From Octopus bimaculoides (taxonomy: Eukaryota), in assembly GCF_001194135.2 (NCBI RefSeq), contig NC_068986.1:55258480-55315454 (forward strand): a stretch of 56,975 bases of DNA. Direction: 5' to 3'. The notes beneath the pieces were generated by a model. It was not told where the DNA came from and searched no databases. It saw only the letters and a list, made by a program, of their open reading frames with translations. A program made the position numbers and the translations under genes. How positions within the stretch are numbered: the stretch's first letter is position 1; every line of letters starts with the position of its first letter. Shown here one piece after another: positions 3,243-56,831 of the stretch.

Positions 3243-3310
3243 TGCCGAAACCCGGGATTAAACCAGGGACCTTTAGATCTTCAGTCTAACGCTCTCCCAA
3301 CTGAGCTATT
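3243..3310 (-). tRNA. tRNA-Phe(GAA), C56>T B-box variant; 5' end in N gap
   Basis: Same sequence but GGTTTAATCC instead of GGTTCAATCC. First five nucleotides fall in the gap starting at 3311. Confidence 0.75.
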
Positions 3311-4810: not shown

Positions 4811-4883
4811 TGCCGAAACCCGGGATTGAACCAGGGACCTTTAGATCTTCAGTCTAACGCTCTCCCAACTGAGCTATTTCGGC
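4811..4883 (-). tRNA. tRNA-Phe(GAA)
   Basis: Identical to the 2266 copy, with oligo-T terminator. Confidence 0.97.
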
Positions 4884-6757: not shown

Positions 6758-6830
6758 GCCGAAATAGCTCAGTTGGGAGAGCGTTAGACTGAAGATCTAA
6801 AGGTCCCTGGTTCAATCCCGGGTTTCGGCA
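6758..6830 (+). tRNA. tRNA-Phe(GAA), divergently oriented copy
   Basis: GCCGAAATAGCTCAG...GGTTTCGGCA, identical to the 2266 and 4811 copies; T10 at 6849-6858. Confidence 0.97.
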
Positions 6831-8000: not shown

Positions 8001-8174
8001 TGACGACGTTCATTCAGTTTCCATCTACCTTATCCACTCACAAGGTTTTGGTCAGCCCAAGGCTATAAGAGAAGACACTTGCCCAAGGTGCCACACAGTG
8101 AGACTGAACCCAGAACCATGTAGTTGAGAAGCAAACTTCTTACCACACAGCCACACCTGTGCATATATATATAA

Positions 8175-9425
8175 CTTACAGTTAATAAAGTGTGTTGCAT
8201 TCTGTTACTTAATAAATATAAAAAATGTATTGTGAATAAACAACAAGTAAAAAATGTATACATATACTGAGTGTACAGCCAGATAGGAGACAGACAAGAA
8301 GGTCCCTAATTCTTCATAGGTTATCTACCAAAATGGTTATACTCAGTTTCGCACCATTAATGAGAATTTCCCTTGCTGGCAGTGACTGCGAAAGTTGTGG
8401 AGATTATAGGGCCTAGAGCAAATAAGACAATACAAAGTAGACATACAAAAGTAGAAAAAAGTAATTAAAGACAAAATAAATAAGAAACAAGCAAAATATA
8501 GCCTCAGGGCCAAAATGAGAGGAATGGTGGGTAACGCTTGAGAAGCCAGCCTAAAGGATATAGAAAACAGTAAATAGTAAGGCACAGAGAATTTATGGTG
8601 TGAAAAGGGGAGAGAATGAAATGAAAACTGGCCATAGGTCACGTGTCAGCAGCAGGTAGAAGAGAAAGTCAGCAAGAGAGAGAGAGCAACAGAGAGAAAA
8701 CAATGGAAGAGATGAAGAGGGGGGAAAAAGGAGAAAGAATAGAAATACAAGAGGGCAAGAGAGAGAAAAAAATGTGAAAGTGGAAAGGTTCGAGTGAGAA
8801 GTAAGAGGGTGAGAGAGAGAAGAGGAGTAAGAGTGAAGAAAGAGTCGCAAGGATATATAAAAATTACTGTTAATAAATGTCAGGATGTGTTGCATTCCGT
8901 TACTTGATAAATGAAAAAATGTATTGTAAATAAACGATGACAGGTAAAAAATGTATATGTATACTGAGTGTACAACTGGACAGGAGACAGACACAGAAGG
9001 TCCCTAATTCTTCATAAGTTATCAACCAAAATGGTAATACTCAGTTTCATGCCATTAATGATAAGACTGAGAACTTCCAATGCTGGAAGTGCCCACGAAA
9101 GTTGCAGAGAATATAGGGCCCAGAGCAAACAAAGTAGACAAGCGAAAGTAAAAAAAATGTAATTAAAGGCGAAATACATAAGAAACGAGCAAAATATAGC
9201 CTCGGGGCCAAAAAGACAAGAATGGTGGGTAACGCTTGAGAATCCATCCTAAAGGGCCCTCTTTCTCCTCTACTTGCTGCTGACACGTGACCTGTGCCCA
9301 GCTTTCCTTTCATTCTCTCTCTTTTTCACACCAATTGCATTGCTGACTGGTCATAGATTCTCTGTGTCTTGCTATTTACTGTTTTCTGTATCCTTTAGGA
9401 TGGCTTCTCTAGCGTTACCCATCAT
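8175..9425. repeat. Local direct duplication plus inversion
   Basis: About 8175-8555 resembles 8862-9255; 9257-9425 is the reverse complement of about 8520-8670. Confidence 0.8.
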
Positions 9426-18130: not shown

Positions 18131-18174
18131 GTCACGTGACGTCTGCGCACACCACGTTGCCTCTCTCTCTTTCC
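18131..18174 (+). promoter_or_regulatory. RPLP2 core promoter: E-box palindrome plus TCT/5'TOP tract
   Basis: GTCACGTGAC at 18131-18140; pyrimidine tract CCTCTCTCTCTTTCCT at 18160-18174. Confidence 0.75.
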
Positions 18175-18234
18175 TGCATCAGAATTCCTCCATAAGTGAC
18201 ATAACACGTTTTCGCGTCAATCTAAGTCTTAAAA
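18161..18234 (+). other. RPLP2: RPLP2 non-coding exon 1 (predicted)
   Basis: Starts in the TOP tract and ends at aaaa|GTAAGT (GT 18235-6). Splicing to 23781 gives ...aaaaaATG. Confidence 0.7.
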
Positions 18235-18881
18235 GTAAGTTATTTTTCCAAGAAAATTCATATTTTTTTGTACCAACTGGTTAATGTAAAGCTTTTCTTC
18301 CGTCTGATTAATATTTTAGATGTTCGTTATGACTATTAAGTTTATGAAACGAAATTCCTTTCTTCCTCACGTTGCTATCATGGAGCACAGCCATGCTGTC
18401 CACACTATCTGCATTTATTAATGCGTGGTACACAACTTGTTTGTTTTCGATAGAAATTATAAAACTTCCTATGAATTCTTAATACAAACTAAATTAATAA
18501 AATACTATATTTTATATATAAGTGAAACTACATTTAGTTCTTAAATTTTGCTTAAAAATGAATCCCTTTTTTATAGATTTTAAAACTTAAGGATGGTACT
18601 ATTTCAAGAAGAGTGGTCTTAAGGATTACAGCTTTATATATATATATATATATATAAAGTAGTAGTAATCTATAAGTTGATATGCATTCACATTCATTTC
18701 GATATTAATAGCGAATTCCATGGAAATATCTGGAAATGTTAGTAGTACAGAGACCACGTGGCTCATTCAAGATTTGTTGAAATTAACATCACTGCTTCGA
18801 AGTTTTTGTTCAACTTATCTGTGTGTAAACAAAATACAAACGTACATATAAAATAAAGTTATTCTTAATGTGAGCTAAAAT

Positions 18882-19013
18882 TTGCACTCCTCGACTGCTT
18901 TCATTCTTCATAGATTGTGAGTTACTGTTTTAAAGTGCTATATTAACTCGGTGATCCTGCGTACACCAACTGTCTTTTATTCAGTCTGGTGCCCGTTAAG
19001 ACACCAGACAAAT
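18882..19013 (+). ncRNA. H/ACA snoRNA copy A
   Basis: Hairpin gcact/agtgc, H box ATATTA 18940-5, second hairpin with pocket cctgcgt / ccgtt, ACA at 19008-10 located 15 nt from the pocket; conserved in copy B. Confidence 0.85.
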
Positions 19014-19527: not shown

Positions 19528-19690
19528 GGTACTACTAAAGCAGCGCGGACCCGGTCGCGCGTCCGCGCTAGCTAGTCGTGAGTGGTCGATACTAACCCTA
19601 AACGTATTCATTTGCACACGCGGGTTAGGGTTAGGATCGACCACTCAAGACTGGCTAGCGCGTTCGGGTTCGCGCTGCTTTAGTAGTACC
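19528..19690. mobile_element. Palindromic MITE with TTAGGG-like internal repeats
   Basis: ggtactactaaagcagcgcg ... cgcgctgctttagtagtacc; internal ctaaccctaa and gggttagggttagg. Confidence 0.8.
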
Positions 19691-20567
19691 CTCATTTTTC
19701 GTTGTTAGAGCAATTAAAATTTCTCATAGAATTAATGTAATGTTGCTTTCCGTTTGAAGGTTATCCCCATATGAGCACTAATCTAACAGAGATGTGATCA
19801 AAGACGTTTCAGTTATTTCTGAATTTTTAATGTGTGATTTGTAGGGAATTTGGCTGCTATTTCTAAACAAGTCGCCCTCTTCTCCATAATCAATTGTCTA
19901 GATTACTGGAGTTAGTGATAGCATGTGTTAAAGCTAAACAAGCACATCACTACTATAGTGATTTTATTGCGCGTCTGACTGATTATATTCTTTATGTAGA
20001 ATTGTAGCCTAATTAGACATCTGTGATCTTCAAAGAGAAGAATCTTAACTAGAGATAATACATAATCCAGATCATGACGAAGCCAGTGGACTTCCACAGT
20101 TTCTTTTTTTGGTGACCGTATACGCTTCAAGCCGTCCCAATTCATTTTTTTACACCAGTTTGTTTGTCAAATAAGTGTGGCCTTATGAAAAAGTTGTTCA
20201 CCTGAGACAGGCTGGTTTGAGTTCAATCCCACTGAACAGCAGTGTGCAAACTACATTAAGCCCAGCATGCAATGTCGGGTAAACTGAACACCCAGTTTTG
20301 CTCAAGTGATATTTGCCCTGTAATAGTAGTCTTGTCACTATTGTCGTTGGAATTATAGTTTATGTCTGGACTAATTTTATATTTATTTTTAGGCAAGGGA
20401 AATGGTATTTAAGATAATGCTTAGCGTTACGTCTTTATGATTTTAAATAACCACGGAGTGTAGAGCTGTTGTGTTGAAATCTGGGGTTGTAGTGGAGCTA
20501 AGACATTAAAACTTATAACTGAAAGTGTAGCATATGGGTTTGGGTTTCCATAGCTGCCATTTCTAGA

Positions 20568-20649
20568 CAGTATAGATGATGACTTCGAATATTTTCTGAG
20601 AGTATGATTAATATTTTATTATGCTACTTTACCACCGTCTGATATACTG
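20568..20649 (+). ncRNA. C/D snoRNA copy A (target unassigned)
   Basis: 7-bp terminal stem cagtata/tatactg; C ATGATGA 20576-82, D' CTGA 20596-9, C' ATGATTA 20604-10, D CTGA 20639-42. Confidence 0.88.
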
Positions 20650-21248
20650 CTATGGCATCTGTGAAACATCTTTATAACTCATTTAACTGATTTAGAAAGG
20701 CAATTGTAACTGATTATATCTAGGGGGGGGGGTAGTAATACTGTACAGTGATGCTCTTAGATTCTTTGCAAATTGGCATTTAGAAGTGTGAAAATTGTCT
20801 ACCATGTTTTGAAAGTTGGGAGTGCCTTGAACAGCTTTAGTGTTTCAAAGTATAATTTAGAATTGTAGTCATTTGTTCTTACAGTTTTTGTATAGGTGCT
20901 GTATTGCAATGAGTCGGGTTTTCACAGGTGTTATGAGTAAACCTATTTGTGCTATCCTCAAAGACATGGCTAATAAACCTGAGCAAGCAGGACATGTTTA
21001 TGTTAGTACCAGCTACCAAGATTAATGGGTTACTTTAAATTTCTTTGTTAAACTATATAAGACATGTATTTTACTTGTAAATTTGTGGAATCTGTCTTAC
21101 ATTTTGAATTCAGAACAAACATCATTGTACATTGAGGTGTTTTCTTTTAAAGCAGAAAGCTATAGATAGATCTGTCTTCACAGGACACTTCTCAGCAATG
21201 TCAGTACTTGTAAATTGTGAGCATGTTTGAAGATGCTATATTCATTAA

Positions 21249-22727
21249 CCCTTTCGTTACCAAAGCCGCCCGAAAAAAATTTTGGTTCGTTTGACCAAGC
21301 CGCCCGTAATCACCTATTCATATTTAAATGAGAATATCTGAGCAAATCTCGTTAGTACATTCGTGAAAACACGTGATTATTTGTGTAAACAGTTCAGCTA
21401 TAGTTTTGTACGACGATCAACATGTTTTTTTAATTTTGTGAATTTTGGGAGATTTTTTTCCAAATTTGTTCCTGTTGTTTTCAATATTTGTAATCCTGAC
21501 AAAAAAAATGGATACGAATTTTATTGTCAAGCAGCGAGTCAGAATTCGAAGGATTTTCCGTTGAAGACCTTGATAAATCTAACTCTGTAACCGAAAAAAA
21601 AAAGCACGTGGTATTTGATAATGAATCTGAGGTTTCATTTTCCGAAAATGAAAGCAGTGAACTCGAGAGCTCCGATAATAGCGATAAAGAGAATGAATTA
21701 GTACCTGAATGGAGTGAAAATTTAAAAACTCCTTCTTTCAGTGATTTTTCTGAAGAAACTGGACCAAGTCATAGTCTTACCCAGGAGAGTAAAGCTTTAG
21801 ACTTCTTTTTGCTTTTTCCGATGTGCCTATTTGAATTGATTACGGCGGAAACAAACCGTTACGCTAAATGTAAACAAAGCGTAAAAAAGGNNNNNNNNNN
21901 CCGTTACGCTAAATGTAAACAAAGCGTAAAAAAGGATAGTTTGAGGTTTCCCATAAACTTGAATGAAATTAAAGCATATTTTGCCATGAATATTATTATG
22001 TGCATTAGAAAGTTACCTAGAATAACAAATTACTGGAGTAGTGATGAACCCTTTGGCGACGAATACGTCTCAAGTATAATGACGAGGATACGGTTTTTAA
22101 AATTGACTCGATATCTACATGTAATAGACACGACCAGTACACCAGTTCGTGGAAAACCAGACTTTGATCCCTTATTTAAAATAAGACCCCTCATTGACTG
22201 TGTTCAAAGCACATATAAAACAGTTTATAGATAAGGATATGGTGGGCTATAAAGGCCGAGTGCGTTTTCAACAGTATATGCCAGGAAAGCGCACAAAATG
22301 GGGGATCAAAGTTTGGAAAGGATTTGTGAATCAAATACTGGGTACTGCTCTGGATTTTAATTTTATACTGGCAAAAGAGACAGTAATAAATCCAGTAATG
22401 TGCACAACTCTTCTATAATAATATTTTGTTGTATACCCAATTGAATATTAGCTAATAACCCATTTTCTATAGCGATGTTTGAACAAAAATTTAAATAATT
22501 TTATATTTTGTTGAATTTACCTGTAATTAAAGTCACTTTGTGACAAAAATTTTGGTATAGAATTGGTTGAGAACCTTTCGTTAATTTATCTTCCAAAAAT
22601 CACATTAATATGTTGATAAATAAAAAAGTTAGAGTTTAATGAAACCAGCCTAAATTTATGATTATGTTAGAAATTAATTGAAACACATAAGGGGTGTAAT
22701 TTGGTTAGAAATATGGTAACGAAAGGG
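21249..22727 (+). mobile_element. Internally deleted piggyBac element
   Basis: TTAA TSDs (21245-8, 22728-31), TIR CCCTTTCGTTACC, acidic N-terminus and PGBD-like transposase fragment (DPLFKIRPLID, YKGRVRFQQYMPGKRTKWGIKVW) with deletions. Confidence 0.92.
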
Positions 22728-22788
22728 TTAAGGGGTTCTAAACAAATGTACATATTAAAATAAAGTTATTCTTAATGTAAGTTAAAAT

Positions 22789-22920
22789 TTGCACTTTCTC
22801 GACTACTTTCACTCTTCATAGATTGTGAGTTACTGTTTAAAAGTGCTATATTAACTGGGTGATCCTGCGTACACCAACTGTCCTAATTCAGTTAGGTGCC
22901 CGTCTAGACACCAGACAATA
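22789..22920 (+). ncRNA. H/ACA snoRNA copy B
   Basis: Paralogue of copy A: gcacttt/aaagtgc stem, H box 22848-53, ACA 22915-7, same pocket sequences. Confidence 0.85.
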
Positions 22921-23369
22921 TATGCATATATCTCAATCAGCTTCTGTGAAAGATTCATTATTGTCAGTCAGAAATTATGTGAGAAAACTTTGCGTTTTTG
23001 GAATAGTTTGTGATTGTCATTGAAAGCTCAGAATGTTGGCTTTTACTTGCATGCTACATCATAGAAGTTACATTAGTAGTTATAATATATAAGCATTATA
23101 ATTGAGGTACACATTGTTGGTACCTAGCTAGAGATTTATAGCACCTGTTATTCAGGAAATGCATTAAAATGTGTAGCTGTTCTGTAAAGGTGTAGGCTCT
23201 GTTCATATCGGCTACTTCATTATTTATAATATATGTTGCAATGCTTACAATGATGAGATTGTGAGGTAAGGTTAATCTATTTAGAAGTAAGTTATAGAAA
23301 TATAGATATCATTAAGTACAGAAAAGTGCTCAAATTTATATTTCTGTTTACTTCAGCTGTCTCCACTAC

Positions 23370-23464
23370 TGCCATTTAACAGATGATGACTTTGATATTG
23401 TTCTGAGAGCATGATTAATTTTCTATATTGCTACTTTACCACCGTCTGATGTACTTTTATGGCA
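23370..23464 (+). ncRNA. C/D snoRNA copy B (target unassigned)
   Basis: C 23383-9, D' 23403-6, C' 23411-7, D 23446-9; outer stem tgccat/atggca; D guide identical to copy A. Confidence 0.85.
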
Positions 23465-23781
23465 AGCAATGTGGAGATTTAACTGTTTACAAAATAAACT
23501 GTTCAATTAATAAATAATTGTTCCAAAAACCTCTTAATTTCAATTTACGTTGCACAATAAGAAGCCTAAAATGCATTTTTTGTTCAATTTGTATTAGCTT
23601 CAGTTAGTGTGTGTGGCAAATTTTTGCTGCTTTTGTAATTTTTTTCATTAGAGAAGTTCTGTTAGGGTGCATGTAATAGCAAATTAGTATTTAATGTTTT
23701 GAAAACCAGGCATCAGATGAGTAAGTGTAACATAAATTTGCCTTATTGATAGGCGTGCATTTTCTTTTATCACATTGCAGA

Positions 23782-23953
23782 ATGCGTTACGTGGCCGCTT
23801 ATCTCCTTGCCACCCTTGGGGGTGTGAAACAACCAACTGAAGCTGATTTGGAGAAGATTTTAGGCAGCGTTGGTATTGAGGCCGAAGCCGGTAAAATGAA
23901 GAAAGTCATCTCACAGCTAAAAGACAAAGACCCAGCTACTCTCATCAAAGAAG
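23782..23953 (+). CDS. RPLP2: 60S acidic ribosomal protein P2, coding exon 1
   Basis: cag|aATG; MRYVAAYLLATLGG...LIKE+G; donor GT at 23954. Confidence 0.98.
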
Positions 23954-25985: not shown

Positions 25986-26081
25986 GTCAGCTGAAGCTTG
26001 CATCTGTCCCAAGTGGAGGTGGTGCTGCTGTTGCTGCTGCACCTGCTGCCTCTGCTGCAGCACCTGCAGAGAAGGCTGAAG
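25986..26081 (+). CDS. RPLP2: RPLP2 coding exon 2 (Ala-rich hinge; missed by the ORF track)
   Basis: cacag|(G)QLKLASVPSGGGAAVAAAPAASAAAPAEKAE+G|GTGAG; phase matches the neighbouring exons. Confidence 0.97.
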
Positions 26082-26224
26082 GTGAGAGGCCAAATATTTC
26101 CTCTTCATTTATCTTTCCTCTATTTCGCTTTTGCTTTTTATTATTAATATTATTTATATATATACTTCAATTTCATTCTGTATTTTTCTAATATGTATTT
26201 TTTTCCTTTAATTCTCCACTACAG

Positions 26225-26295
26225 AAAAGAAAGAAGAGAAGAAAGAGGAGTCAGAAGAATCAGATGATGACATGGGCTTTGGTCTCTTTGACTAA
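26225..26295 (+). CDS. RPLP2: RPLP2 coding exon 3
   Basis: ctacag|(E)KKEEKKEESEESDDDMGFGLFD*; total CDS 339 nt (112 aa); ATTAAA at 26323-8. Confidence 0.98.
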
Positions 26296-33371: not shown

Positions 33372-34225
33372 AATTCCATATATACATATGAACACCCATG
33401 TGCATTTCCTCACTCTCATCACAGCTAATGAGTTGTACCAATCTTCAAAATATGATATTGTTTTCAAATTTTGATACAAGGCCAGTAATTTCAGTGTAGT
33501 GGGTGAGTCAATTACATCAACCCCCATACTTAAATGGTACTTATTTTATCGACCACAAAAGGATGAAAGACAAAGTCAACTTTGGTGGAATTTGAACTCA
33601 GAATGTAAAGACAAACGAAATTATACTAATCATTTTTTCCAGCTTGCCACCGCTTTCTAGATATAAGTTTGGGGGAGGGGTTAAGTCAATTACATTGTGC
33701 CAATGTACTTATTTTATCAACTCTGAAAGGATGAAAGGCAAAGTCAACCTTGGAAGAATTTTAACCCAGAACATAAAGACAGATGAAATACCACTAAGCA
33801 TTTTGCTTAGCATGCTAACTATTCTACCAGCTCACACAGCCTTTCTTCTGATTGTAATATTAAAAAAGTAAATTTTAAGCAGCAAACTAGTGATTAGTTT
33901 TCTCTTCAAAACCTTATATAGTTAGTTGAATTACTGGCTGAATAAGTGCAGGTAAGCAGAGTCAATTGATTATGTGGCATGATTAACATTATAACTTCCC
34001 CAATGGATCTCTGTTCAGCATCTAATAAAATGTCAACAACTTATCAAAATAAAACATTTATCAACCAGATCCAGTTCATTACTGCTTATAAGCAAAACAA
34101 CATTTAAGCATTAAACTGTAATTGATATTCAACTATTAATTAGTAATTAAAGCATATATTACTTTGAAATAATAAATTTATTGCAACATAAACGATATCC
34201 ATTAATCTGTTTCAGGTTTTTCAGA

Positions 34226-35275
34226 ATGAATCTTGAAACCAGGCGGGACATTTTGCGTTGTTATTATGCATCAAGGAATTCTCCTGTTGCTGCCCTTCGT
34301 TTATACAAAAAAGAAAAGGGATTAAAGCATGACCCTTGTGATCCAACGACTGTTACTAAACTTGTTAAACGTTTTGAAGAAACTTACACTCTCATGGATA
34401 AGCCAAAATCTGGTCGCAAATCATTGGCGGATGAACGGAGAAGCTTGATTGAAGATGCAAAAACATATCTGCAAACAACATCCATACGTGCTATTGCTGC
34501 AGCTACTGGAATTCCAAAATCATCAGTTTACCGTTTACTGAGAAATGATCCCGAGTTGTATCCTTATAAAATGTCACTGGTAGAAGAGCTCAATGAGTGG
34601 GACAAACCCAAACGCCTTGTCTTTGCCAATTGGCTTCAGGAAAATGTCCATTTGATCTCACGCATTCTTTGGAGTGATGAAGCCCACTTTTATCTTGATG
34701 GGAGAATTATTCGCCATAACTGCAGAATCTGGAGTCGACACAAAACAGAAAATGATTTAGAACTGTCTTTGAATGGTCCCAGACTAACTCTGTGGATGGG
34801 ATTCACATCTGAATTTGCGCTGGAACCATTCATCTTTGACGAAAATGAACACATCAATGCTGATAATTATCTGGCTATGTTGCAACAGCATGTGCGACCT
34901 CAACTTGTTAGAAAAGGTAAACTTTCTCAGACAATTTTCATGCAAGATGATGCACCAGCACATTTTGCACCAGCCGTAAAAGATTTTCTCATTAACACTT
35001 TCACTGCGGAACGCGTGATTTCTCCTGGCTGTTCTAATGAATGGCCACCACGATCCCCTGACATAATACCAGTAGACTATTGGTTTTGGGGGTGTCTAAG
35101 ATCTAAAATTTTTCATAATAACTGTCCAACAACTCTGTTTGAAATGAAATGCAAAATCATAGAAGCATGTAATAATTTCACTATAGAAGACTTTTCAGCT
35201 GCTGTTGCTAATCTACCAAAGCGTGTTGAGCACTTAATACAAGCTGCAGGTGGGCATATTGATCATATTGTATAG
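34226..35275 (+). CDS. Intact Tc1/mariner DD41D(Visitor)-family transposase, 349 aa, DD42D spacing
   Basis: Uninterrupted ORF; HTH N-terminus; WSDEAHF, QDDAPAH, WPPRSPDIIPVDYWFWG; 42 residues counted between D2 and D3; no TIR found by eye. Confidence 0.9.
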   Translation: MNLETRRDILRCYYASRNSPVAALRLYKKEKGLKHDPCDPTTVTKLVKRFEETYTLMDKPKSGRKSLADERRSLIEDAKTYLQTTSIRAIAAATGIPKSSVYRLLRNDPELYPYKMSLVEELNEWDKPKRLVFANWLQENVHLISRILWSDEAHFYLDGRIIRHNCRIWSRHKTENDLELSLNGPRLTLWMGFTSEFALEPFIFDENEHINADNYLAMLQQHVRPQLVRKGKLSQTIFMQDDAPAHFAPAVKDFLINTFTAERVISPGCSNEWPPRSPDIIPVDYWFWGCLRSKIFHNNCPTTLFEMKCKIIEACNNFTIEDFSAAVANLPKRVEHLIQAAGGHIDHIV

Positions 35276-47631: not shown

Positions 47632-47703
47632 GTACTAATTGTGATGATTAGATATCGCCCCAGTCTGAATTGTGTGACTGAATCGATATAACTGATTTAG
47701 TAC
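47632..47703 (+). ncRNA. SNORD31: C/D snoRNA, SNORD31/snR67-like, copy 1
   Basis: Stem gtactaa/ttagtac; C 47641-7; guide tatcgccccagt; D' 47665-8; D 47692-5. Confidence 0.9.
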
Positions 47704-48586: not shown

Positions 48587-48664
48587 GTGTACTTATTGTG
48601 ATGGATAAGATATCGCCCCAGTCTGAATTATCTGACTGAATCGATATCACTGATTATAGTACAC
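48587..48664 (+). ncRNA. SNORD31: SNORD31-like copy 2
   Basis: C GTGATGG; guide intact; D' 48623-6; D 48650-3; stem gtgtact/agtacac. Confidence 0.85.
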
Positions 48665-52235: not shown

Positions 52236-52308
52236 GACTAATTGTGATGAATAAGATATCGCCCCAGTCTGAATTGTGTGACTGAATCAATATAACTGAA
52301 TTTAGTAC
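52236..52308 (+). ncRNA. SNORD31: SNORD31-like copy 5
   Basis: C 52244-50, guide intact, D' 52269-72, D 52296-9. Confidence 0.88.
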
Positions 52309-52774: not shown

Positions 52775-54095
52775 CCCTTTCGTTACCATATTTCTAACCA
52801 AATTACACCCCTTATGTGTTTCAATTAATTTCTAACATAATCATAAATTTAGGCTGGTTTCATTAAACAATAACTTTTTTATTTATCAACATATTAATGT
52901 GATTTTTGGAAGATAATTTAACAAAAGGTTCTATACCAAAATTTTTGTCACAAAGTGACTTTAATTACAGGTGAAAACAGGTAAATTCAACAAAATATAA
53001 AATTATTAAAATTTTTGTTCAAACATCGCTATAGAAAATGGGTTATTAGCTAATATTCAATTGGGTATACAACAAAATATTATAGAAGAGTTGTGCACAT
53101 TACTGGATTTATTACTGTCTCTTTTGCCAGTATAAAATTAAAATCCAGAGCAGTACCCAGTATTTGATTCACAAATCTTTTCCAAACTTTGATCCCCCAT
53201 TTTGTGTGCTTTCCTGGCATATACTGTTGAAAACGCACTCGGCCTTTATAGCCCACCATATCCTCATCTATAAACTGTTTTATATGTGCTTTGAACAGTC
53301 AATGAGGGGTCTTATTTTAAATAAGGGATCACAGTCTGGTTTTCNNNNNNNNNNNNNNNNNNNNNNNNNNNNNNNNNNNNNNNNNNNNNNNNNNNNNNNN
53401 NNNNNNNNNNNNNNNNNNNNNNNNNNNNNNNNNNNNNNNNNNNNNNNNNNNNNNNNNNNNNNNNNNNNNNNNNNNNNNNNNNNNNNNNNNNNNNNNNNNN
53501 NNNNNNNNNNNNNNNNNNNNNNNNNNNNNNNNNNNNNNNNNNNNNNNNNNNNNNNNNNNNNNNNNNNNNNNNNNNNNNNNNNNNNNNNNNNNNNNNNNNN
53601 NNNNNNNNNNNNNNNNNNNNNNNNNNNNNNNNNNNNNNNNNNNNNNNNNNNNNNNNNNNNNNNNNNNNNNNNNNNNNNNNNNNNNNNCGGAAAATGAAAC
53701 CTCAGATTCATTATCAAATACCACGTGCTTTTTTTTTCGGTTACAGAGTTAGATTTATCAAGGTCTTCAACGGAAAATCCTTCGAATTCTGACTCGCTGC
53801 TTGACAGAATAAAATTCGTATCCATTTTTTTTGTCAGGATTACAAATTTTGAAAACAACAGGAACAAATTTGGAAAAAAATCTCACAAAATTAAAAAAAC
53901 ACGTTGGTCGTCGTACAAAACTATAGCTGAACTGTTTACACAAATAATCACGTGTTTTCACGAATGTACTAACGAGATTTGCTCGGATATTCTCATTTAA
54001 ATATGAATAGGTGATTACAGGCGGTTTTGGGCGGCTTGGTCACATGAACCCAAATTTTTTTCCAGGCGGCTTTGGGCGGTTTGGTAACGAAAGGG
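52775..54095 (-). mobile_element. Deleted piggyBac, near-identical to 21249-22727
   Basis: TTAA 52771-4 and 54096-9; same TIR and internal sequence in reverse orientation. Confidence 0.92.
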
Positions 54096-54293: not shown

Positions 54294-54367
54294 GACTAAT
54301 TGTGATGAATAAGATATCACCCCAGTCTGAATTGTGTGACTGAATCGATTTAACTTGAATTTAGTAC
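54294..54367 (+). ncRNA. SNORD31-like copy 6, weakened
   Basis: Guide G>A (tatcaccccagt); D box reads CTTGA; lies in a roughly 190-bp block duplicated from copy 5. Confidence 0.65.
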
Positions 54368-56756: not shown

Positions 56757-56831
56757 TGTACTAAAGTGATGAACATGATATCCGCCCCAGTCTGAATTTT
56801 GTGACTGAGTTGATATAACTGATTTAGTACA
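56757..56831 (+). ncRNA. SNORD31: SNORD31-like copy 8
   Basis: C 56766-72; guide ccgccccagt (10 Watson-Crick pairs to ACUGGGGCGG); D' 56792-5; D 56819-22. Confidence 0.9.

Follow-up and report, generated by a model that had tools for sequence, protein, structure and literature searches.

Small nucleolar RNAs (snoRNAs) of the box C/D class and U24 (SNORD24) type and the extra-base-pairing snoRNAs are the described systems closest to the two RNA genes treated here, which lie in the RPLP2 gene of Octopus bimaculoides, within a 56,975-nt stretch of assembly GCF_001194135.2 (contig NC_068986.1, forward-strand positions 55,258,480-55,315,454; herein called the window, with position 1 as its first nucleotide). 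In the Rfam consensus of SNORD24 (RF00069), AAUAUUUGCUA precedes box D' and AACCACCAAGAUCG precedes box D, which are complementary to 28S rRNA UAGCAAAUAUU and GAUCUUGGUGGU, respectively. Vertebrate U24 sits in RPL7A. The octopod RNAs are similar to U24 in that both are box C/D RNAs with antisense elements addressing the same 28S stretch, GAUCUUGGUGGUAGUAGCAAAUAUU, both have D guides with ACCACC (and, in the distal Octopus copies, a D' guide with AAUAUUU, as in U24), and both are intron-encoded in a ribosomal protein gene. However, the octopod host gene is RPLP2, and the register is different. The octopod D guide reaches across the point where the two U24 target blocks UAGCAAAUAUU and GAUCUUGGUGGU meet; its D box lies 5 nt closer to ACCACC, which places a U (yeast 1442) instead of C1437 at D+5, that is, opposite guide position 5 as counted from the D box, and its 5' half complements AGUAGCAA, which in U24 belongs to the D' guide. 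Extra-base-pairing snoRNAs of yeast and human (such as snR75, snR76, and snR70; van Nues et al. 2011, PMC3116282) combine a short primary duplex by the D box with a further conserved element, located in the same spacer, whose rRNA partner adjoins the target. By predicted pairing the octopod guide resembles them in both features, with the difference that only a 2-nt bulge of the guide, and none of the rRNA, intervenes between its two blocks. The octopod RNAs are read here, with rather better than even confidence, as a lineage-specific pair of paralogous box C/D snoRNAs hosted by RPLP2 that guide 28S methylation by means of a two-part guide.

The two genes are unannotated and are both located on the + strand, a distal copy at 20568-20649 and a proximal copy at 23378-23455. 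Judged by boxes and stems, both are box C/D snoRNAs, as the first-pass annotation of this DNA had proposed. Each contains the full set of C box ATGATGA, D' box CTGA, C' box ATGATTA, and D box CTGA in the order C box, 13-nt D' guide, D' box, 4-nt linker, C' box, long spacer, and D box, and the final 17-18 nt of the long spacer form the shared guide. In the distal copy, the C box is found at 20576-20582, the D' guide at 20583-20595, the D' box at 20596-20599, the C' box at 20604-20610, the D guide at 20622-20638, and the D box at 20639-20642. It is enclosed by a perfect 7-bp terminal stem (CAGTATA 20568-20574 with TATACTG 20643-20649) and a 6-bp outer stem (TGCCAT 20555-20560 with ATGGCA 20652-20657). 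The proximal copy contains the C box at 23383-23389, the D' guide at 23390-23402, the D' box at 23403-23406, the C' box at 23411-23417, the D guide at 23429-23445 (18 nt when T23428 is included), and the D box at 23446-23449. Its outer stem is again 6 bp long (TGCCAT 23370-23375 with ATGGCA 23459-23464), and its inner terminal stem comprises only 3 bp. Position 20568 is herein the first base of the distal terminal stem and 23464 the last base of the proximal outer stem.

Within the alignment of copies, pairing in the terminal and outer stems holds for 91% of cells, with three compensatory pairs; in controls with the 3' partners slid by 1-3 columns, pairing is seen in 12-60% of cells. Fold energies compared with shuffled sequences give z scores of -3.1 to -3.5 in three of the four copies folded. 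The distal copy of the window reaches -3.26 with its terminal stems formed, and the proximal copy is weaker at -1.26. A covariance model built from four copies (R1) scores 132 bits on the distal and 111 bits on the proximal copy, and sequence and repeat comparison identify both. The two copies are 85% identical over approximately 84 aligned nucleotides. The window contains two exact copies of the 21-mer TGCTACTTTACCACCGTCTGA (20622-20642 and 23429-23449, each on the + strand), with a chance expectation of none; no third site is found in the 57 kb on either strand with up to three mismatches. Hence, TGCTACTTTACCACCGT-CTGA is common to both copies, whereas the D' guides (CTTCGAATATTTT versus CTTTGATATTGTT) and the post-C' spacers are unlike, exactly as first described for this pair.

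The same box C/D RNA is found at the RPLP2 locus of Octopus sinensis, Octopus vulgaris, and the argonaut Argonauta hians. Argonauta contains two units at the same place (8082-8195 and 9130-9243 of its locus, L002), as does O. bimaculoides. O. sinensis and O. vulgaris contain five units each: four intact distal units, identical and amplified upstream of the proximal unit, and a proximal unit that is destroyed by a short interspersed element (SINE) of approximately 230 nt between the C' box and the D guide (L128 9336-9672 in O. sinensis; L129 9224-9534 in O. vulgaris). This split copy, the orthologue of window 23378-23455, shows a T-to-A exchange at guide position 10. Among the seven distinct intact copies from the four species, the longest invariant run is the 22-nt TGCTACTTTACCACCGTCTGAT, which takes in the D guide and D box plus one additional base. 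The C and D boxes, including D' CTGA and C' ATGATTA, are likewise invariant in all seven, with variation in the D' guide, the linker from D' to C', and the spacer past C'. Apart from the RNA elements and exons, BLAST aligns nothing between the introns of Octopus and Argonauta. Because the D guide is identical while the surrounding intron is unalignable, its conservation reflects selection. On this comparison of sequences the D guide is under purifying selection, which bears out the suggestion made from the two window copies. At RPLP2 of scallop, two abalones, limpet, and Aplysia, no orthologue is detected by box finder, guide-complement scan, covariance model R1, or Rfam. One R1 match in the limpet Patella (16.8 bits) is judged spurious, as it sits upstream of exon 1. 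By the mollusc loci sampled, the family appears to be octopod-specific, or possibly cephalopod-wide.

The rRNA partners of the D guide were predicted on environmental eukaryotic large-subunit (LSU) and rDNA contigs of a metagenome collection of 241 million records. The canonical form of the stretch homologous to yeast 1430-1460 is CUUGGUGGUAGUAGCAA. Its 23-mer GGTGGTAGTAGCAAATATTCAAA is present in at least 120 stretches, and GATCTT lies directly upstream in 118 of 120 among the matches listed; GAUCUUGGUGGUAGUAGCAAAUAUUC is likewise present in 118 of 120 environmental eukaryotic LSU contigs among the matches listed. A scan of the rDNA contigs gives no perfect complement of the D guide in conserved rRNA, in agreement with the first-pass annotation. 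A perfect match could arise through an AA insertion in 28S (GGTGGTAAAGTAGCAAATATTC), for which the entire collection gives zero matches.

The top rRNA partner is the conserved 28S GAUCUUGGUGGUAGUAGCAA in the U24 region, with nine consecutive base pairs along guide positions 2-10 (118 contigs among the matches listed). Herein, positions 2-10 pair with 28S UUGGUGGUAG by seven Watson-Crick and two terminal G-U pairs. Alternatively, positions 2-8 pair, U9 and U10 bulge out, and positions 11-17 pair with AGUAGCA. In the proximal copy, this second block extends to 8 bp between UUGCUACU and AGUAGCAA (positions 11-18, AGUAGCAA). The other recurrent partners are 28S GGACGGUGGUCAUGG with eight pairs, 18S GGGUGGUGGUGCAUGG with nine pairs of which three are G-U, and 28S GGGUGGUAAA with nine pairs; only 28S GAUCUUGGUGGUAGUAGCAA accounts for the 5' half of the guide as well. 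According to RNAduplex, the bulged 28S duplex reaches -21.1 kcal/mol, the other three sites -13.8 to -15.5 kcal/mol, and a perfect complement -29.9 kcal/mol. The bulged duplex had been listed before as one candidate among others, and it emerges as the best site in 25 of the 27 rDNA contigs of at least 6 kb. In an anchored test, which demands six Watson-Crick pairs at positions 3-8 followed by eight more within 2 nt on either strand, 37 of 20,000 shuffled guides reach such a 6 + 8 match in five contigs. Since the two-part 28S complementarity is thus non-random, the label "orphan" that the pair had been given is not supported. The D guide is represented by 20622-20642 with the D box in the distal copy (exact repeat, rDNA scan, duplex energy, shuffles, and alignment) and by 23428-23449 in the proximal copy (exact repeat, duplex energy, and alignment).

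With the octopus 28S taken from conservation, the guide would form nine or more base pairs in a row and place a target nucleotide at D+5, in the manner of box C/D snoRNAs. In Arabidopsis, no fewer than nine base pairs in succession, with G-U allowed at the ends, are present at 100 of 104 assigned sites (PMC8053127). Box C/D ribonucleoproteins read at most approximately 10 bp, and position 1 is unpaired and plays no part in substrate binding (PMC7229835). Accessory "extra base-pairing" beside the target stimulates methylation up to fivefold and is found in more than half of yeast C/D snoRNAs, especially in those with a short primary guide (PMC3116282, PMC5389607). The combination of a short primary duplex, a 2-nt break, and an accessory helix fits these published rules, and the RNA is, therefore, taken as a 28S methylation guide. 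It is probably an ordinary rRNA methylation guide, the predicted site of which is not among the known methylations of model organisms.

The proposed sequence of events starts with release of the RNA from the RPLP2 pre-mRNA and its assembly with Snu13, Nop56, Nop58, and fibrillarin. The D guide would then bind the universally conserved 28S 5'-UUGGUGGUAGUAGCAA-3', which is flanked by the two U24 target sites. Beside the D box, positions 2-8 (or 2-10) would form the short duplex that is read by the enzyme. Past the UU bulge, the 5' half UGCUACU would pair with AGUAGCA(A) to an accessory helix of 7-8 bp that adds affinity and specificity. The residue that fibrillarin would 2'-O-methylate is the first U of GGUGGU, which faces guide position 5. 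As this U lies five nucleotides 3' of the U24 D-guide C (yeast C1437), it corresponds to yeast 25S U1442, as well as to Drosophila 28S U1684 and Arabidopsis 25S U1452. Being unconserved and without a consistent rRNA partner, the D' guide is probably inactive: on rDNA, the D' guides give scattered positions only, at -10 to -14 kcal/mol.

Several observations weigh against this assignment. In human 28S, the same stretch contains Cm2338, Am2350, and Cm2352, and is not known to contain Um2343. The Drosophila map lists only Cm1679, Am1691, and Gm1692 here (PMC11014333), Arabidopsis is methylated at C1447, A1459, and G1460 and yeast at C1437, A1449, and G1450 (PMC8053127), and the predicted U is absent from all three. 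The contiguous duplex comprises no more than the seven Watson-Crick and two G-U pairs. Of 120 shuffled guides, 7 find a site of equal duplex energy somewhere along one 8.4-kb rDNA contig, so energy alone is only suggestive. The target sequence in octopus 28S is itself deduced from universal conservation. In addition, UGCU of the guide folds onto AG(U/C)A upstream of the C' box in RNAfold predictions, which could weakly account for the conservation of the 5' half in another way. Finally, the unpaired U1, U9, and U10 are as invariant as the paired positions, as a perfect target would predict; this invariance rests on approximately three independent lineages.

The last point leads to the alternative that survives best, although we regard it as unlikely: the pair could be a true orphan, in line with the third candidate of the first-pass annotation, with a guide that evolved for a perfect non-rRNA target, ACGGUGGUAAAGUAGCA, in an mRNA, tRNA, small nuclear RNA (snRNA), or lineage-specific RNA, and the 28S resemblance would then be an ancestral residue. 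In favor of this reading, none of the 17-18 guide positions varies between species or paralogues, not even the mismatched position 1 or the two bulged U; a perfect duplex would gain approximately 9 kcal/mol in stability, and no curated family matches. However, the perfect-target sequence is not found in the 57-kb window on either strand with up to three mismatches, the two-part 28S match is unlikely to arise by chance, and the invariance of three or four unpaired positions is weak evidence when it stems from approximately three independent lineages. A narrower form, to which we give slightly less credence still, is that the invariant 17-nt guide with its two "bulged" U serves a cephalopod-specific perfect target outside rRNA, the likeness to 28S being that of a retargeted U24-like ancestor.

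A further alternative, improbable to a degree just beyond these, is binding of the U24 region of 28S without methylation, with the RNA serving to chaperone folding, to compete with U24, or to time it; the U24 elements address the overlapping GAUCUUGGUGGU and UAGCAAAUAUU. The position of the guide over the junction of the two U24 target blocks, the non-canonical geometry of two helices with a bulge, and the unmethylated state of the predicted U in model-organism maps (PMC11014333, PMC8053127) are all consistent with such a role. On the other hand, nothing is broken in the D box, K-turn stem, or D+5 register, nine consecutive pairs are possible, and most snoRNAs of such anatomy methylate.

Very doubtful is a function of the 3' half of the guide as a redundant guide for 18S GGGUGGU*GGUGCAUGG. 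The U marked herein is presumably universally methylated and guided by U33/snR55. Nine consecutive pairs along positions 1-9 recur in many 18S-bearing contigs, but three of them are G-U, the energy is -15.4 versus -21.1 kcal/mol for the 28S duplex, and the invariant 5' half UGCUACU remains without a partner. 18S contains a Um/Gm pair that is universally conserved (Drosophila Um1357 and Gm1359; PMC11014333). This U presumably belongs to that pair. The remaining short rRNA matches, 28S GGACGGUGGUCAUGG (8 bp, positions 1-8) and 28S GGGUGGUAAA (9 bp, positions 3-11), are the least probable targets of all: both are present in many rDNA contigs, yet they reach -15.5 and -13.8 versus -21.1 kcal/mol, the former relies on position 1, which is not part of substrate binding (PMC7229835), and neither explains the invariant 5' half. 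The latter match is the second candidate of the first-pass annotation, 28S GGUGGUAAA, for which the 9 bp indeed exist, whereas its energy is the weaker one (-13.8 versus -21.1 kcal/mol) and the 5' half is left unexplained.

Membership in a known family was assessed with Rfam. Neither copy reaches the gathering score of any Rfam family, as had been expected for this pair, and permissive E-values return only generic C/D matches together with a subthreshold match to SNORD24, the best one at the level of the guide. The latter scores 20 bits on the distal copy (E = 0.64) against a gathering score of 41; at E ≤10, SNORD24 matches neither the proximal copy nor the single copy of Argonauta that was scanned. 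Of a U24-type D guide to GAUCUUGGUGGU with C1437 at D+5, only ACCACC is common, with U at D+5; a U24-type D' guide to UAGCAAAUAUU (the yeast A1449/G1450 region) is not found. The distal Octopus D' guides keep 8 nt of it (AAAUAUUC) in a different register, and the proximal and Argonauta copies are without them. Membership in U24 is rejected on the subthreshold score, the D register shifted by 5 nt, and the unconserved D' guide. Descent from a U24-like ancestor is possible. U24/SNORD24 goes unmentioned in a paper on planarian fibrillarin (PMC11649923).

The octopod pair is, thus, a lineage-restricted addition to a well-known class, with a slightly unusual bipartite guide. If the methylation reading is true, a universally conserved 28S position between three ancient U24-guided sites would carry, in octopods, an added 2'-O-methyl group that is specific to their lineage. 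The pair would also provide a natural case of a short primary guide that is aided by an adjacent accessory helix across a 2-nt bulge, which bears on the target rules of C/D RNAs and on how many "orphan" snoRNAs are bulged rRNA guides. In addition, the locus documents how an intronic array of snoRNAs arises and turns over within a ribosomal protein gene. The significance is modest and specific to the fields of snoRNAs and ribosome modification; a new kind of system is not at hand.

The host gene was located by tblastn with human RPLP2 and by sequence reading, and the spliced product of the window is 100% identical to the O. bimaculoides 60S acidic ribosomal protein P2 (RPLP2). All of its exons are on the + strand. 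Putative exon 1, recognized by sequence and conservation, is a pyrimidine-rich 5' untranslated region (UTR) at 18160-18234 (start approximate) that ends in AAAA/GTAAGT; it is 85% conserved with Argonauta L002 6604-6692 and O. vulgaris L129 7-121. The exon with the start codon (MRYVAAYLL...) follows at 23781-23953, its ATG at 23782 lying 1-2 nt past the acceptor, and later coding exons lie at 25986-26082 and 26226-26295. Both snoRNA copies are, therefore, located between exon 1 and the ATG exon. The donor context of exon 1, CTTAAAA/GTAAG, is common to Octopus (window 18225-18240) and the limpet Patella (L006 9195-9212). Patella has only approximately 0.8 kb of intron, without snoRNA, separating exon 1 from the ATG exon; by comparison with it, the octopod array appears to have been inserted or expanded within an ancestral single intron.

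Upstream of each C/D copy lies an H/ACA-like element on the + strand, X1 at 18884-19013 (ACA 19008-19010) before the distal and X2 at 22791-22920 (ACA 22915-22917) before the proximal copy, so that the repeat unit consists of an H/ACA-like and a C/D element. X1 is supported by conservation in Argonauta and by the consensus fold, X2 by 95% identity to X1 and the same fold. This fold comprises a hairpin, ATATTA as the H box, a second hairpin, and ACA, laid out as in an H/ACA snoRNA. The element is conserved between Octopus and Argonauta, with a compensatory change in one stem pair. Further copies are found at Argonauta L002 7572-7712 and 8658-8798, and five each in O. sinensis (L128) and O. vulgaris (L129). 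No Rfam family matches, the top score being 17 bits for SNORA19. Vertebrate RPLP2 hosts the intronic SNORA52. The octopod locus is similar in that RPLP2 serves as a snoRNA host and the array also contains an H/ACA-like RNA; it differs by the lack of an Rfam match for this element and by the tandem arrangement of H/ACA and C/D units in the 5'-UTR region. A nested palindrome at 19528-19690, between X1 and the distal C/D copy, has arms of 33 nt and 38 nt (91-92% complementary), resembles a miniature inverted-repeat transposable element or foldback element, and forms part of the spacing, which is longer here than in Argonauta.

The two snoRNA copies are separated by a piggyBac-like insertion of approximately 1.49 kb at 21245-22731, which is identified by its inverted repeats and a Pfam match. 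Its terminal inverted repeats are perfect over 18 nt including TTAA (21245-21262 and 22714-22731). Inside, an N gap at 21891-21900 is flanked by an exact direct repeat of 35 nt (21856-21890 equals 21901-21935). When the gap and one copy of the 35-mer are removed, the open reading frame matches Pfam DDE_Tnp_1_7 (PF13843) with E = 1.7e-23, unbroken across the join. On account of the flanking duplication and this unbroken match, the gap is an unmerged 35-nt overlap of contig ends inside the element. It lies more than 1.2 kb from either snoRNA, touches neither, and affects only their spacing, which is nominally 2807 nt, with approximately 1.49 kb of transposon. A second copy of the same element, with the N terminus MDTNFILSSSESEFEGFSVEDL..., is found at approximately 53280-54000 on the - strand, broken by a long N run. 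A 364-residue, intact-looking open reading frame at 34181-35275 (+) resembles a transposase of the mariner/Tc1 type.

The window contains further RNA genes. Five copies of SNORD31 above the Rfam gathering score are located on the + strand at 47634-47701, 48592-48658, 52238-52305, 54296-54364, and 56760-56828, presumably in a separate host gene downstream of RPLP2; Argonauta contains two SNORD31 copies at the same relative position (L002 20246-20692). At the other end of the window, four tRNA-Phe(GAA) genes lie amid N gaps, at 545-617, 2266-2338, and 4811-4883 on the - strand and at 6758-6830 on the + strand, and a partial tRNA-like Rfam match is found within this cluster at 3249-3310 (-). A tRNA is also present upstream of RPLP2 in Argonauta, at L002 3437-3509.

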